From positions 682,001-746,000 of the forward strand of contig BQFW01000003.1 in the NCBI GenBank assembly GCA_020891255.1: 64,000 nucleotides of DNA, in the 5' to 3' direction. Shown piece by piece: positions 59,322 to 64,000 of this stretch. This stretch comes from Entomortierella parvispora E1425 (lineage: Eukaryota; Fungi; Mortierellomycota). The notes beneath the pieces were generated by a model. The model was given only the letters and a program-made list of their open reading frames with translations, had not been told where the DNA came from and made no database searches. The number at the start of each line of letters is the position of its first letter. Within the stretch, counting starts at the first letter, position 1. Made by a program: the position numbers and the translations under genes.

Positions 59322-62300
59322 TCAAGCGGCTCGGTTTCGAAGGCGACGAGGTCCATAGTCCTTCTTTGATTTGACTGCCGACATTGCCTTCCCATTCACC
59401 GCACTGTCCTTCGAGAGATGAAGGGCCTCCGTATCTTCTACCAGGGTATCTGTTGATGCACTGTTGGGCGACGAAGAGGAGGCAGCAGAAAAGTCGGTTG
59501 TCGCCGCAGTACTGGCGCCGTTGAAGGACAACTTGGCGGCGGCGTAGATTGACAGGGCCTCTAGATCTGGTGTCACCTCCAACACCTCAACCACATCCTC
59601 GTCTTCCGATTCATCAGTCTCAATCTCGATGGGGTACTCTGGCGCATCTATGAAGTTCTCGTCATTGTCGTTGTCCTCAGCCAGATCCTCGCCGAGGTAG
59701 TCGTCCTCGTCCTGTACTATTGAATCGTCTGGAGTGCCAGAAAGTGACGACAGCTCCTCCTCGTCATCACTGCTATCGTCCTCTTCTTCAGAGATAGGCG
59801 CCTGTTCCGCTTCCTCCCGCTCCAACGCCTGGGCGCGAAGATCATCAATGACACCATCAAGGCTACGCTTGCGACACTGCCGTGCTTGCATCAACCAAGC
59901 CCGATCCACCTTATCCTGATAACTTCTCGACTTTGTCTGAGCGTATTTGACGTACTATTGTAGGGCAATCATCCATTAGTCAGGTACATCAACAAAAAAA
60001 AAAAAAAAAAAATACTTCTTGAATCTTACCTTTGACTCCACCAGGCGCACATTGCGGAAGAGGAAAAGCCGGGTGTATCGAATAGCAATCATTTTGCCCA
60101 ACTTGTACTTGTCTGACTGACGCATTCGAATCTGACCAATACTTGGCATCTGTCCCAAACGTTGTGAACTTTGCTCCATGTCGTGTACCTAAATAATACC
60201 ATAGTGGATGTCGCCCACAAGAAAACCATTAGATTCTGTCCAGCGATGGGATAGCTAAACCCACAACTGATGTTTTGGACTTACTCTGCGGTGGCCTCCT
60301 TTGCGTTTGTCGCCCTTTTTCTTTCCAGATTTTGAAGACGAGCCCAGAGCGCCAGACTCTGGAACTGCTTTCTTTGAGCTTGTTCGTTCACCGATGTAAC
60401 CGCGGCAGTTGGGTGCATCACAGCGACAGAGTTGTTTTTGAGCACCACTGAAGGAAGAGAAGTTGTAGTCATAGCTGATCTCTGCGCCAGCGGGAATATC
60501 CTGAGAGGCAAAAATTCCAATGCTCATCTCGCCGTTCAAGAACCACTTTTCGATTTGACTGTTGGGTGAACAACTAGAAGAAAGTAATAGAAAACAATAT
60601 TCGATGAGACTCCATTGCGTTTGCATGACCTGCGAGTAGATCGTATTATAGCAGTCATTTTACCTGTGATTAACGAATCGAGCGTTTGTTCCCTTCATAC
60701 AGGCATCGACAACTTCACCCTTCTCGTACTCCAAAAAGTAAAAGTTCTTGTTGTTTTTGTAAATGCCCTCCATGCGCTCATGGCAAAGCGCCTGAGAAAT
60801 GACCTCTCCACGGTACTCGATAACAAGATTGCCCTTCTTGATAGGTTCCAGTGTTTGAATACCAAATCCACGCTCTGGCGTCTATTAGGTGATATTAGAT
60901 GGTACAAGGTTAGTGAGTGTCACTAATTAAAACTCCAAGCGATTCACATATAACAACTGCTCTTCTTACGTAAATGACGCGAAGATGGTCTTCGCTGTGC
61001 TTCCTTTGGAACCGCTGATTAGAACATTGATCTCCGCAAGGGCAATGGGCAGAAATGCACTCGTAAAACATGACGCGATTATAGCAATCTTCGCCGCATC
61101 CTACTCGGCCAGCTCCTGGAGGAGGTCGAACACAGTGACAAACCATCGGACTAGTTTCTGTTCTACGTTTACGTTCCACGAAGATATCTAACAAAAGAGT
61201 ACATGAGGCTCGGTGAGTTGTTCGTCAAGAGAGCAGCAAGAGACATATTTTCCAAAAAAAAAAATTCTTACTGCTTCTGATTTTGGTAAATGGCTCGGGT
61301 TGTTTAGTCAAGCGCAAAAGACCATGTTTCCAGGCATGCATGATATCGTAGGGCAGGACGAAATCTCGTTGCTTCTCCAACAATGTGGCGCCATAGTTGA
61401 TCGGCAAAGGGAATGCCCTGTTTCCATGCTCAGGTGCCTTTAAGACTGCCCGAGTTCCCGCTCTTGTTGGCTTGGTTGAATTCTTTGAGGTCGCTGGTGC
61501 GGGGGCAGGGTTCACCTTTAAATCTGATGAATACAATCCTGATTTCAGATATGTCTTCTTCACAAGTCGGGCAACCACCTTGGCCGATTCGTCATTAATA
61601 GATGATTCGTCATCCTATATCAAGAATTAAAGAAAGGTGTTAACAGAAGAAACATGAAGAAAAAAAGAAGAAACAAGGCATGTTCCACACAATCAACATA
61701 CAGAATCGGACTCTGGGTCATTTTTCGTCTTTGATGATGTTGCAGCCGAGGTTTGCTTCGTGCTCTGTTTTCCTGCGTGCATTGCGACGGGCGCTTTTTT
61801 AACGGCAACGACCTGCTTTGGCTTTGCTTTCTCAGCTAGTTTCGCCTTTTCAACCAGCTTCGCCTTTTCAGCCAGTTTCGCTCTCTCGACCGACTTTGCC
61901 TTCTCCACCAGCTTGGCCTTTACGATCGATTTCGGCTTTGGGCCTGGCTTGCCTTTTTCAATGTCCTTCTGTGGCTTCACGGACTCCTCGTCCTTGGGTT
62001 GCTTTTTGTACTCGGTTTTAAATTCCGGCAGGATCAATCCATCTGGACCTCTAGGGAGCGGAGGTCGACCGGGACCACGCTTTACTCCATTGGCGTCATA
62101 TCCTTTGATAACCCTGTTGGGGTTACGGGGTCTGCCAACACTTCTCTTGGGGGGTGGAGGTGGAGGGATAAATCCAGGAGGGTACTTCCATGGTGGTCTT
62201 CCTGGTCCTCTTTTAACTGGGGGCGTCACGACAGCTGGTATTAACGAAGCCTGACTCGAACCGCCGGCTGCGTTGTTGTTCAGGAAAGCGACCTGGTTGG

Positions 62301-63885
62301 CTGGGGTAAGGACCTGGGCCATAGGCTGTTGTGCTGACACGGACATTCGAACGGGGAATGGAGGAGGGCGCCCTGCTCCAAGGGGTGGACCAGGAACAAG
62401 AACAGGAACAGGGGTCCGTAAAACTCTGCGTCGCAAATTTGGCATGTTGGGAGATGTAACAGATGATGCTGTCTCAGGGGTTGATTCCTGCATACCCGTA
62501 GATCGCGCTTTGGATGAAGATTGTGAAACTCCTCCCACGGAGGCTCTGTCATCCTCCGCCATGTCAACATCCACTACCGAGGAAGTATCGCTTGTTGAGC
62601 GCTCTCCTGATTTGTTCGAGTTGACTTCTTTCTTCATACTTGAAGTTGATCTAGATCCTCGCTCTTGGTTTGTGTCATCCGCCCTCGCGCCATCAACGGA
62701 TCCTGTGCGTGAAAGGGACTTGCGATCGTCTACTTTGGCTGCCACCTTGGCAGCTTGGACGGCGGCTCGCTGCATCCAGTTTCCTTTTGGTGTAATGTAA
62801 ACACTGGGGTCGAATTTTTGAATGGGCATTACAGCCGCCCTTCTCTTGGATCGTTGTTCAATAATGTTGTCCCTGCAGACATCACTCGGACTTGGCGTTC
62901 GGCGTCTCTTGACACTAGCAGCAATCCCTTCTGAGATGACAGACTCGGCTGTCGAGTCGGCACGTGCACGTGATTTGGGTTCAATGGGGATAGCCCATCC
63001 TGCTGCCACAGCCGCTGCAACTGCAGCCTGTGCCTCGGCCTTCACCGCAATTCTGGCTTCACGAACAATCACTGAGGGGCGATCCACGGTATCGGATCGA
63101 TCACATGGAATTTTAGCCTTAACGCAGCGATGACATACAGTATTGTAGTCGCATCGACGATGTGATTTGCGGCAATGGGCACACGACGTAGGGCCCAAGA
63201 AATAGCCGGGAGGTCTTCCAGGTTTTCTTTTTTGGGGCATCGTCGATGCGCCATTGTCAGAAGATGTTGAGCTCATGGCCGTGCTTGGGTTAGGTGCATA
63301 CGTAGTACGGGCCTTGTCTGCGATCAGCGCATGTGTAAGTCGTGGTTTAGCAAGCACGCTGAGGGGAACTCCGAATCCGGGTACGGTTGTCGACTCTGGA
63401 GCCAAACTGCTATCGATTTTGAATATTGGGACATCCCGCAGTCGCAGATCATCTGAATTAGCGAAAGAAAAGACATCCAGTCTCTCTTCCTTGTCTGATG
63501 CTGCCTCCAGATCGGCCTGTGGTGTTTGGGGACCTGAGGACGATGCATTATCAGCGGGCTCTTCCCTCCATTCTTCTGGATTGGAGTTGGTGACCAAATG
63601 CTGGGTCTGCGGATCAGGCATTGGTACAACCCTCTTAAGTCCAGATCTCAAAGTGGACACAAATGTCCTCCTGGGTCTTTCTGTCAAAGTCTTTTCGGCT
63701 GTGACCGTTGCCGCCCCGTTGGCCTGAAGACGCTCTTGCAGATCTTGCTCCTCATGGGCTCGGTTTTGTCGCTGCATGTTGGCCACCGTCAGATCGGCCA
63801 ACCATCGCCCGCCTACTGGTGTATCCGACGATCCTGAACCATTATCCTTTGTGGGCACTGTTTGATCTAAGGTTATAAACTTCAT
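59322..63885 (-). CDS. ASH1: ASH1-type (AWS-SET-postSET) histone H3K36 methyltransferase with an N-terminal Zn(II)2Cys6 cluster and AT-hooks, ~1350 aa, 7 exons
   Basis: ASH1L-like pre-[15 protein letters not shown]...DFVLPYDI...PFTKIRSNIFV; AWS CHC...[12 protein letters not shown]...[13 protein letters not shown]; SET RGFGI...EYRGEVI...ARFVNHSCSPN...EISYDYN; post[16 protein letters not shown]. First exon (63885-61702) joins in phase 0 via GTATGT..TAG (61701-61615). Confidence 0.88.
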
Positions 63886-64000
63886 GTCAGAAATGTTCAA
63901 GATCGGAACAAAACAGTCATCTCAACTCTAGGCAACATTTGGTAGTTTTCTTACCAAAGCTGACAACTCGCTTACTTCGGGTGGCACGCGTCCCTGTGAC

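Follow-up and report, generated by a model that had tools for sequence, protein, structure and literature searches.

Does an ASH1-type histone methyltransferase of an early-diverging fungus carry its own sequence-specific DNA-binding module, and would such a module direct where the enzyme acts? The question is raised by a gene on the minus strand of a 64,000-nucleotide (nt) stretch of the Entomortierella parvispora E1425 genome (contig BQFW01000003.1, positions 682,001 to 746,000; hereafter the window), where an earlier reading of the DNA letters (the original prediction) had placed a Gal4-type Zn2Cys6 cluster ahead of an ASH1-type methyltransferase and had suggested a sequence-specific writer of histone H3 lysine 36 (H3K36) methylation. 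What guides ASH1-type enzymes to their targets is still an unsolved problem. Our comparison of gene models, orthologues and assembled transcripts indicates that a Zn2Cys6-type cluster and an ASH1-type AWS-SET-postSET cassette are encoded within one predicted protein, and that this fusion is real and conserved. The proposed architecture stands, given the identity of the translation to a public protein, the spliced contigs of Linnemannia elongata and the recurrence of the arrangement in at least ten genera; the gene boundaries first assigned to it were incomplete. All coordinates are window positions on the minus strand, and those termed window-equivalent extend the numbering past the window end (64000).

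Using the window and DNA fetched upstream of it, we obtained a gene model of nine exons with a coding sequence of 4404 nt, which starts about 730 nt past the window end and encodes 1467 residues (Table 1). Its translation is identical to the public E. parvispora protein P0021 (1467 residues), titled '[histone H3]-lysine4 N-trimethyltransferase ASH1L [Entomortierella parvispora]'. The original prediction had started the gene at an ATG at 63885 and ended it at 60285. That ATG falls within an 88-nt intron (63954-63867), and therefore the long exon that encodes the cluster, previously taken as exon 1, really begins at 63866; the N-termini of orthologues (MAVKAKKRKL...EMLAMTR) align with the exons upstream of it. 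At the other end, two more 3' exons follow, and the stop codon is reached at 59322. The 87-nt intron that separates the cluster exon from the catalytic part, with its GTATGT donor, AG acceptor and phase-0 join (61701-61615), is present as originally described.

Transcript evidence that one mRNA spans both parts comes from L. elongata. P0022, which is 99% identical to L. elongata P0025, is encoded by a single uninterrupted 4377-nt open reading frame (ORF) on contigs of about 5 kb assembled from six separate runs (SRR6256850-55). Aligned with L. elongata genomic DNA, the mRNA contig resolves into nine blocks separated by eight intron-sized gaps of 80-331 nt, which are bordered by GT..AG wherever the block ends are clean. 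The exon count is thus the same as in E. parvispora, and a 92-nt intron lies where the window has the 87-nt intron and is spliced out in the mRNA contigs. From the uninterrupted contig ORF and the eight genomic introns it follows that the cluster exon and the AWS-SET exons belong to one spliced mRNA in L. elongata, and the suggestion that the cluster exon might be transcribed as a gene of its own is not borne out. Separately, the L. elongata mRNA contig runs about 920 nt beyond the stop codon, antisense into a convergent NDUF_B7 gene (L003:4540-5460 versus L008:6961-7885); this extension represents either a long overlapping 3' untranslated region or an assembly merge.

The AWS-SET-postSET motifs reported for the downstream exons are intact, with an AWS match and the two halves of SET on consecutive exons. 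The NHSC motif straddles the junction of exons 6 and 7, with only its Cys on the latter, and YDYNF is present, so that the catalytic and S-adenosylmethionine-binding motifs are complete. When the catalytic part was compared with PDB sequences using phmmer, human ASH1L scored highest (248 bits), followed by SETD2 (177 bits) and NSD3 (162 bits). Just ahead of AWS, DFVLPYDIM aligns with DFQLPYDIL of human ASH1L in the ASH1L-MRG15 complex (chain 6INE_A, 68.7 bits), and FxLP[YF]DI is common to animal, chytrid and Dikarya ASH1 relatives. Schmaehling et al. (2018; PMC5963871) describe the binding of MRG15 to an FxLP motif that is conserved close to the SET domain of Ash1, and an MRG-domain gene is present in the E. 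parvispora genome (G000:C10:1297372-1298007). The SET/post-SET region aligns with ASH1L at 71.5 bits (YDYNFxSF...QLCxC..CRGxIG), including the post-SET CxCx4C, and the SET/post-SET junction parallels YDYNFHSFNVEKQQLCKC. A Pfam scan of the C-terminal exons detected no bromodomain, PHD or BAH domain, which the animal relatives possess (PF00439, PF00628 and PF01426, respectively); other fungal ASH1 proteins also lack them, indicating that these domains define an animal subgroup only.

The genome contains one other AWS gene, with an SRI domain 3.5 kb downstream on the same strand, and this gene is therefore Set2. These comparisons identify the gene as the only one in E. parvispora for an ASH1-type histone lysine methyltransferase, with a predicted H3K36 specificity. 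The public name, which designates an H3 lysine-4 trimethyltransferase, is probably misleading, since the closest solved relatives are SETD2, NSD and yeast Set2 chains labelled as H3 lysine-36 specific, together with ASH1L, described as H3K36-specific in papers. The annotation of this genome was built by AUGUSTUS with cDNA hints from RNA sequencing and its names were assigned via KofamKOALA (PMC8759367), which accounts for the KEGG Orthology-style 'lysine4' in the title.

As for the cluster, six cysteines with the spacing Cx2Cx6Cx5Cx2Cx6C lie in the long exon exactly where they had been reported, and this spacing falls within the Zn2Cys6 pattern Cx2Cx6Cx5-12Cx2Cx6-8C. Pfam domains were scanned exon by exon, and Zn_clus (PF00172, gathering cut-off 21 bits) matched residues 233-264 of the long-exon translation at 22.5 bits (E = 1.2e-4); in a whole-genome Zn_clus scan the same cluster scores 27.7 bits. 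At least 25 further Zn_clus loci exist elsewhere in the genome, showing that E. parvispora makes use of the fold, and the ASH1 cluster ranks 23rd of the 26 Zn_clus matches. Only one other locus in the genome matches a profile made from the cluster block (G000:C2:449009-449143, plus strand; 31 bits, E = 1e-5). It lies within a 558-residue open frame in which Zn_clus itself reaches 37 bits; this distant paralogue may be the closest stand-alone zinc-cluster relative.

Against PDB sequences, the profile of the cluster block matched only Zn2Cys6 factors, namely Pho7 of Schizosaccharomyces pombe (6E33 and 6O19) and PPR1. The two Pho7 matches (E = 0.016, 18 bits, and E = 0.021) have identical Cys spacing and share RCIKAK with the query. 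The structure of Pho7 on DNA shows bases read by N299 and K300, phosphates contacted by K301 and Q296, and an N-terminal arm that inserts Arg284 into the minor groove (PMC6265462). Residues N299, K300 and K301 align with His, Arg and Arg here, and the position of Q296 is occupied by Arg, all of them invariant or nearly so in the family.

An AlphaFold model of an 86-residue block (mean predicted local distance difference test score, pLDDT, of 69, and about 70-77 over the cluster) shows short helices at fragment residues 19-23 and 35-40, which start at the Cys1-Cys2 and Cys4-Cys5 pairs; zinc is not modelled. A 224-residue model was poor (mean pLDDT 58). When the former was searched with Foldseek against 350,542 PDB chains, the top 16 matches, for which only the rank order was used, were all Zn2Cys6 DNA-binding domains (PUT3, Pho7, PPR1, GAL4, HAP1, LEU3, 1CLD and AlcR), and the core superposes on GAL4 at 1.4 Å over 31 columns. 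ESM Atlas look-ups with P0021 and P0040, the latter being the Spinellus relative discussed below, returned generic SET clusters only, with scores below 0.85.

On either side of the cluster lie further elements of the N-terminal arm. The AT-hook-like motifs mentioned in the original prediction are present in the same exon, four in number. Their core reads P-G-R-P three times and V-G-R-P once; the R-G-R-P core of AT-hooks occurs in none of them and Pfam detects no AT_hook, and they are best called AT-hook-like. Shortly after the last Cys, a long Ala-rich helix is predicted at the place where the linker and dimerization helix of Gal4-type factors would be. A homodimer structure prediction for residues 338-423 gave scores of 0.01 and 0.00, which is evidence neither for nor against dimerization.

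The cluster region is covered by 41 Mortierellaceae sequences, which we gathered with two word searches plus an exhaustive profile search. All 41 contain Cx2Cx6Cx5Cx2Cx6C with the same spacing, so that the Cys conservation proposed earlier as a check is complete, and they represent at least 10 genera (Entomortierella, Mortierella, Haplosporangium, Modicella, Dissophora, Linnemannia, Lunasporangiospora, Gryganskiella, Podila and Actinomortierella). The entire stretch AT-hook-(T)SC-cluster-DR..TV.RP..IVREAR is invariant or nearly so. No other part of the N-terminal arm is as well conserved as the AT-hook-like motif, the cluster and the helix taken together, whose mean column identity is 79% versus 44% for the whole alignment. 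Between E. parvispora and L. elongata, 22 of the 46 codons of the AT-hook-like motif and cluster differ by synonymous changes only and 6 by replacements, which indicates purifying selection on the protein; with its Pfam match and its invariant Cys, the cluster is no chance pattern. Judged from these sequences, the combination of cluster and ASH1 cassette is fixed across the Mortierellaceae.

Outside this family, the Zn2Cys6 cluster is absent from the nearest ASH1-type relatives among the sampled chytrids, Dikarya, animals, plants and Mucoromycotina. When 1.84 billion representative proteins were searched exhaustively using HMMER and the cluster-block profile, 12 of them matched at E <= 0.001, nine of which were already within the Mortierellaceae set. 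The three new matches were two Mortierellaceae fragments (Podila epigama and Mortierella sp. AD032) and a 790-residue product of a Logan contig with the same cluster and AT-hook-like motifs, so that all named matches belong to the Mortierellaceae. Relatives from chytrids (Spizellomyces and Irineochytrium) and Dikarya (Orbilia and Elsinoe) consist of AWS-SET only, with neither cluster nor GATA finger. Two Mucoromycotina proteins, from Endogone sp. FLAS-F59071 (P0039) and Spinellus fusiger (P0040; L009:1001-3878), instead carry two GATA fingers (PF00320, 76 and 55 bits) N-terminal to AWS-SET; both are predicted multi-exon models, and they are the only two examples. With the chytrid and Dikarya relatives devoid of the cluster and the two sampled Mucoromycotina equipped with GATA fingers, the concern that such an architecture might already be common among fungal ASH1 proteins can be set aside.

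Table 1 Features of the E. parvispora ASH1-type gene, listed in the direction of transcription.
Feature	Position	Strand	Evidence
Coding exon 1, with ATG (MAVKAKK; ATG GCC GTG AAG...)	64726-64704 window-equivalent, outside window	minus	Upstream sequence, orthologue N-termini, identity to P0021
Intron 1, 393 nt	Between exons 1 and 2, outside window	minus	Upstream sequence
Coding exon 2, 356 nt	64310-63955 window-equivalent; in-window 3' end 63955..64000	minus	Upstream ORF and sequence, P0021 identity
Intron 2, 88 nt, GTAAGA...TAG, phase 1; contains ATG 63885	63867..63954	minus	Sequence, phase fit, P0021 identity
Coding exon 3 (originally 'exon 1'): long N-terminal arm, AT-hook-like motifs, Zn2Cys6 cluster, predicted helix, low-complexity stretches	61702..63866	minus	Sequence, P0021 identity
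AT-hook-like KRKPGRPP, 8 residues before Cys1	63208..63231	minus	Near-invariant columns in family
Zn2Cys6-type binuclear cluster, Cx2Cx6Cx5Cx2Cx6C	63103..63183	minus	Pfam Zn_clus, spacing, orthologues, AlphaFold/Foldseek
Predicted long Ala-rich helix (IVREAR..AKAEA..AVAAG), 25 residues, 8 residues after Cys6	63004..63078	minus	AlphaFold models, nearly invariant columns
AT-hook-like KRGPGRPP	62191..62214	minus	Sequence; GRP core kept in orthologues
AT-hook-like KRSVGRPRN	62122..62148	minus	Sequence; GRP core kept in orthologues
AT-hook-like KRGPGRPP	62059..62082	minus	Sequence; GRP core kept in orthologues
Intron 3, 87 nt, GTATGT...TAG, phase 0; between cluster exon and ASH1 catalytic part	61615..61701	minus	Sequence, P0021 identity, orthologue mRNA
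Coding exon 4, pre-AWS segment: FPLP and FVLPYDI motif (61362-61342)	61272..61614	minus	ASH1L alignment
Intron 4, 84 nt, before exon 5	61271-61188	minus	
Coding exon 5, AWS domain	60970..61187	minus	Pfam AWS 59.8 bits
Intron 5, 88 nt, before exon 6	60969-60882	minus	
Coding exon 6, N-terminal half of SET up to NH(S)	60664..60881	minus	Pfam SET 32.4 bits, profile positions 1-67
Intron 6, 90 nt, before exon 7	60663-60574	minus	
Coding exon 7: C-terminal half of SET (..CSPN, YDYNF), post-SET CxCx4C, basic tail	60285..60573	minus	Pfam SET 29.7 bits, positions 69-105; ASH1L alignment
Intron 7, 96 nt, before exon 8	60284-60189	minus	
Coding exon 8: conserved C-terminal block (QMPS..QIR.RQSDKYK..IRYT.LFLFRN.RLVESK), without known family	60030..60188	minus	Pfam scan, orthologue alignment
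Intron 8, 75 nt, before exon 9	60029-59955	minus	
Coding exon 9: remainder of conserved block, acidic tail, stop	59322..59954	minus	Sequence, P0021 identity

Two other regions of the protein may be mentioned. The block that follows post-SET (60030-60188 and 59800-59954) is strongly conserved and corresponds to no Pfam family; an acidic tail lies behind it. Near the end of the long exon (about 61816-61923) there is a Lys/Ala-rich six-residue repeat, which is absent from the aligned orthologues.

What, then, would the cluster do in an ASH1-type enzyme? Based on these comparisons, we consider it rather probable that the enzyme is a DNA-sequence-guided chromatin writer, tethered via the cluster to particular sequences for H3K36 methylation. 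In such a mechanism the cluster would bind two zinc ions, and its first helix would lie across a CGG-like triplet in the major groove, with the invariant His-Arg-Arg making DNA contacts at the positions of Pho7 Asn299 and Lys300 (bases) and Lys301 (phosphate). The adjacent AT-hook-like arm would occupy the neighbouring minor groove, in the manner of Pho7's N-terminal arm, and a composite DNA site bound jointly by cluster and arm would serve to anchor the ASH1 cassette. The tethered enzyme, stimulated by the fungal MRG protein, would then methylate H3K36 independently of RNA polymerase II. Binding may take place as a monomer, as for Pho7, or as a dimer through the helix that follows the cluster, as for Gal4.

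Several points weigh against this reading. Zinc binding, DNA binding and methylation are predicted only, for all members of the family. The Pfam scores are marginal: the orthologues scanned all show Zn_clus at 19.7-25 bits, some of them below the 21-bit cut-off, and because they straddle it, PF00172 appears in the precomputed Pfam column for just 1 of the 38 full-length family models (Actinomortierella wolfii). The AlphaFold confidence over the cluster is moderate, Foldseek gave no PDB match at E < 0.1 (best E 0.12), the Arg306-Asp320 salt bridge that stabilizes the Pho7 module is not conserved, and the AT-hooks are degenerate, with PGRP instead of RGRP. Moreover, some Zn2Cys6 proteins function without DNA contact. 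Finally, a run search for the 5.8-kb locus listed no RNA sequencing run for the E. parvispora genome, so that for splicing in this species we rely on the public model, built with RNA hints, and on the orthologue mRNA.

The alternative that survives best, possible but in our view doubtful, is that the six-Cys module is a zinc-stabilized structural or protein-interaction module, or else a low-specificity DNA or nucleosome anchor that raises chromatin affinity together with the AT-hooks. Marginal Pfam and Foldseek scores would be compatible with such a role, yet every one of the closest relatives of solved structure is a genuine sequence-specific DNA-binding domain. A general affinity for the minor groove is suggested by the four AT-hook-like motifs, and a Drosophila study states that ASH1 requires its AT hooks for mitotic chromatin binding (PMC8426247); however, between genera in which the flanking sequence is down to about 40% identity, neither the His-Arg-Arg contact positions nor the distance from AT-hook to cluster varies. 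The homodimer prediction, which gave no verdict, leaves room for an anchor as well, whereas the Mucoromycotina relatives hold GATA fingers, i.e. another sequence-specific module, in the same arm.

It is very unlikely that the fusion is a gene-model artefact, in which the cluster exon would be a separate transcription-factor gene that prediction software had fused to a downstream ASH1 gene. Apart from the missing E. parvispora RNA run, what speaks for such an artefact is that merged models do occur in the family annotations: P0035 (Linnemannia zychae, 2251 residues) includes an upstream protein kinase, and P0013, P0018 and P0019 (Mortierella alpina) include a downstream MAGE-domain gene. The same kinase and MAGE-domain neighbours flank the gene in L. 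elongata (L008), which points to conserved synteny and to annotation artefacts. The junction between the cluster exon and the next exon, in contrast, is kept in all full-length orthologue models and lies inside the single ORF of the L. elongata contigs from six runs. In the window, the cluster exon has no in-frame stop ahead of its phase-0 GTATGT donor and the next exon is 87 nt away, and the E. parvispora model was itself made with cDNA hints. Equally improbable is that the cluster is a leftover of some ancient fusion, now without function: its low rank among the Zn_clus matches of its own genome marks it as divergent, but its Cys residues and flanks are invariant in 41 sequences amid abundant synonymous change, i.e. 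under purifying selection.

With a DNA-sequence-guided writer as the preferred reading, a strongly conserved, family-wide putative DNA-binding module makes the question of ASH1 targeting directly testable with an 80-residue fragment, and it offers a compact natural design in which a DNA-binding domain and a writer are combined. The parallel GATA-finger version in Mucoromycotina suggests that built-in DNA binding may be a general solution in early-diverging fungi. We therefore put forward, as a tentative generalization that could well prove too broad, that in Mucoromycota an RNA-polymerase-independent ASH1 would be guided by built-in DNA-binding modules acquired independently, consisting of AT-hook plus Zn2Cys6 in Mortierellomycotina and of two GATA fingers in Mucoromycotina. 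If true, cis motifs would directly specify where ASH1-marked chromatin domains form, and a chromatin state for which targeting in Neurospora and animals is unexplained would be reached by a genetically instructive route.

These proteins are already public under the name ASH1L, and the zinc cluster is mentioned in no paper that we found. Literature searches combining Zn2Cys6 with SET or ASH1, Mortierella with ASH1, and Mucorales GATA with ASH1 brought up no publication describing ASH1 fused to a Zn2Cys6 or GATA module. In the main text of a survey of 18,718 fungal SET proteins (PMC12581908), neither zinc nor Mortierell nor architecture occurs as a word.

Among characterized zinc-cluster factors, Pho7 is the closest parallel. 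It resembles the E. parvispora module in the x2, x6, x5, x2, x6 spacing, in RCIKAK, in the polar or basic character of the base-contact residues and in the basic arm beside the cluster. In contrast to the ASH1-type protein, however, Pho7 is a conventional transcription activator without an enzyme domain, and the match between the two is weak. The arm in the E. parvispora protein is an AT-hook-like PGRPP. Whereas Pho7 binds as a monomer, the E. parvispora cluster is followed by a long helix, as in the dimeric Gal4, PUT3 and HAP1. The GATA-finger proteins of Endogone and Spinellus, which are the closest relatives outside the family (52% identity over the catalytic part), likewise place zinc DNA-binding modules N-terminal to AWS-SET, but these are two GATA fingers instead of a Zn2Cys6 cluster, and the proteins are shorter (820-864 residues).

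The targeting of Neurospora ASH1 is unexplained, and beyond an AT-hook that protein has no telling conserved domain (Bicocca et al. 2018, PMC6251624). With Neurospora ASH1 (NCU01932) and animal ASH1/ASH1L, the E. parvispora protein shares AWS-SET-postSET, the FxLPYDI just before AWS and the YDYNFxSF...QLCxC region. As in ASH1/ASH1L, AT-hook-like motifs lie in a long disordered N-terminal arm, and the enzyme is the second of H3K36 type beside Set2. It differs from animal ASH1L in having no bromodomain, PHD or BAH domain, and from every sampled ASH1 outside the Mortierellaceae in possessing the Zn2Cys6 cluster.

PRDM9 and other PRDM proteins, in which a PR/SET domain is combined with a C2H2 zinc-finger array, embody the same concept of a histone methyltransferase and a sequence-specific zinc DNA-binding module in one polypeptide. 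The two systems differ in their catalytic domains (PR/SET versus AWS-SET-postSET), in their DNA-binding modules (C2H2 array versus binuclear cluster), in kingdom and likely in the mark deposited. By analogy only, the E. parvispora enzyme may be regarded as a putative sequence-specific H3K36 writer comparable to PRDM9.

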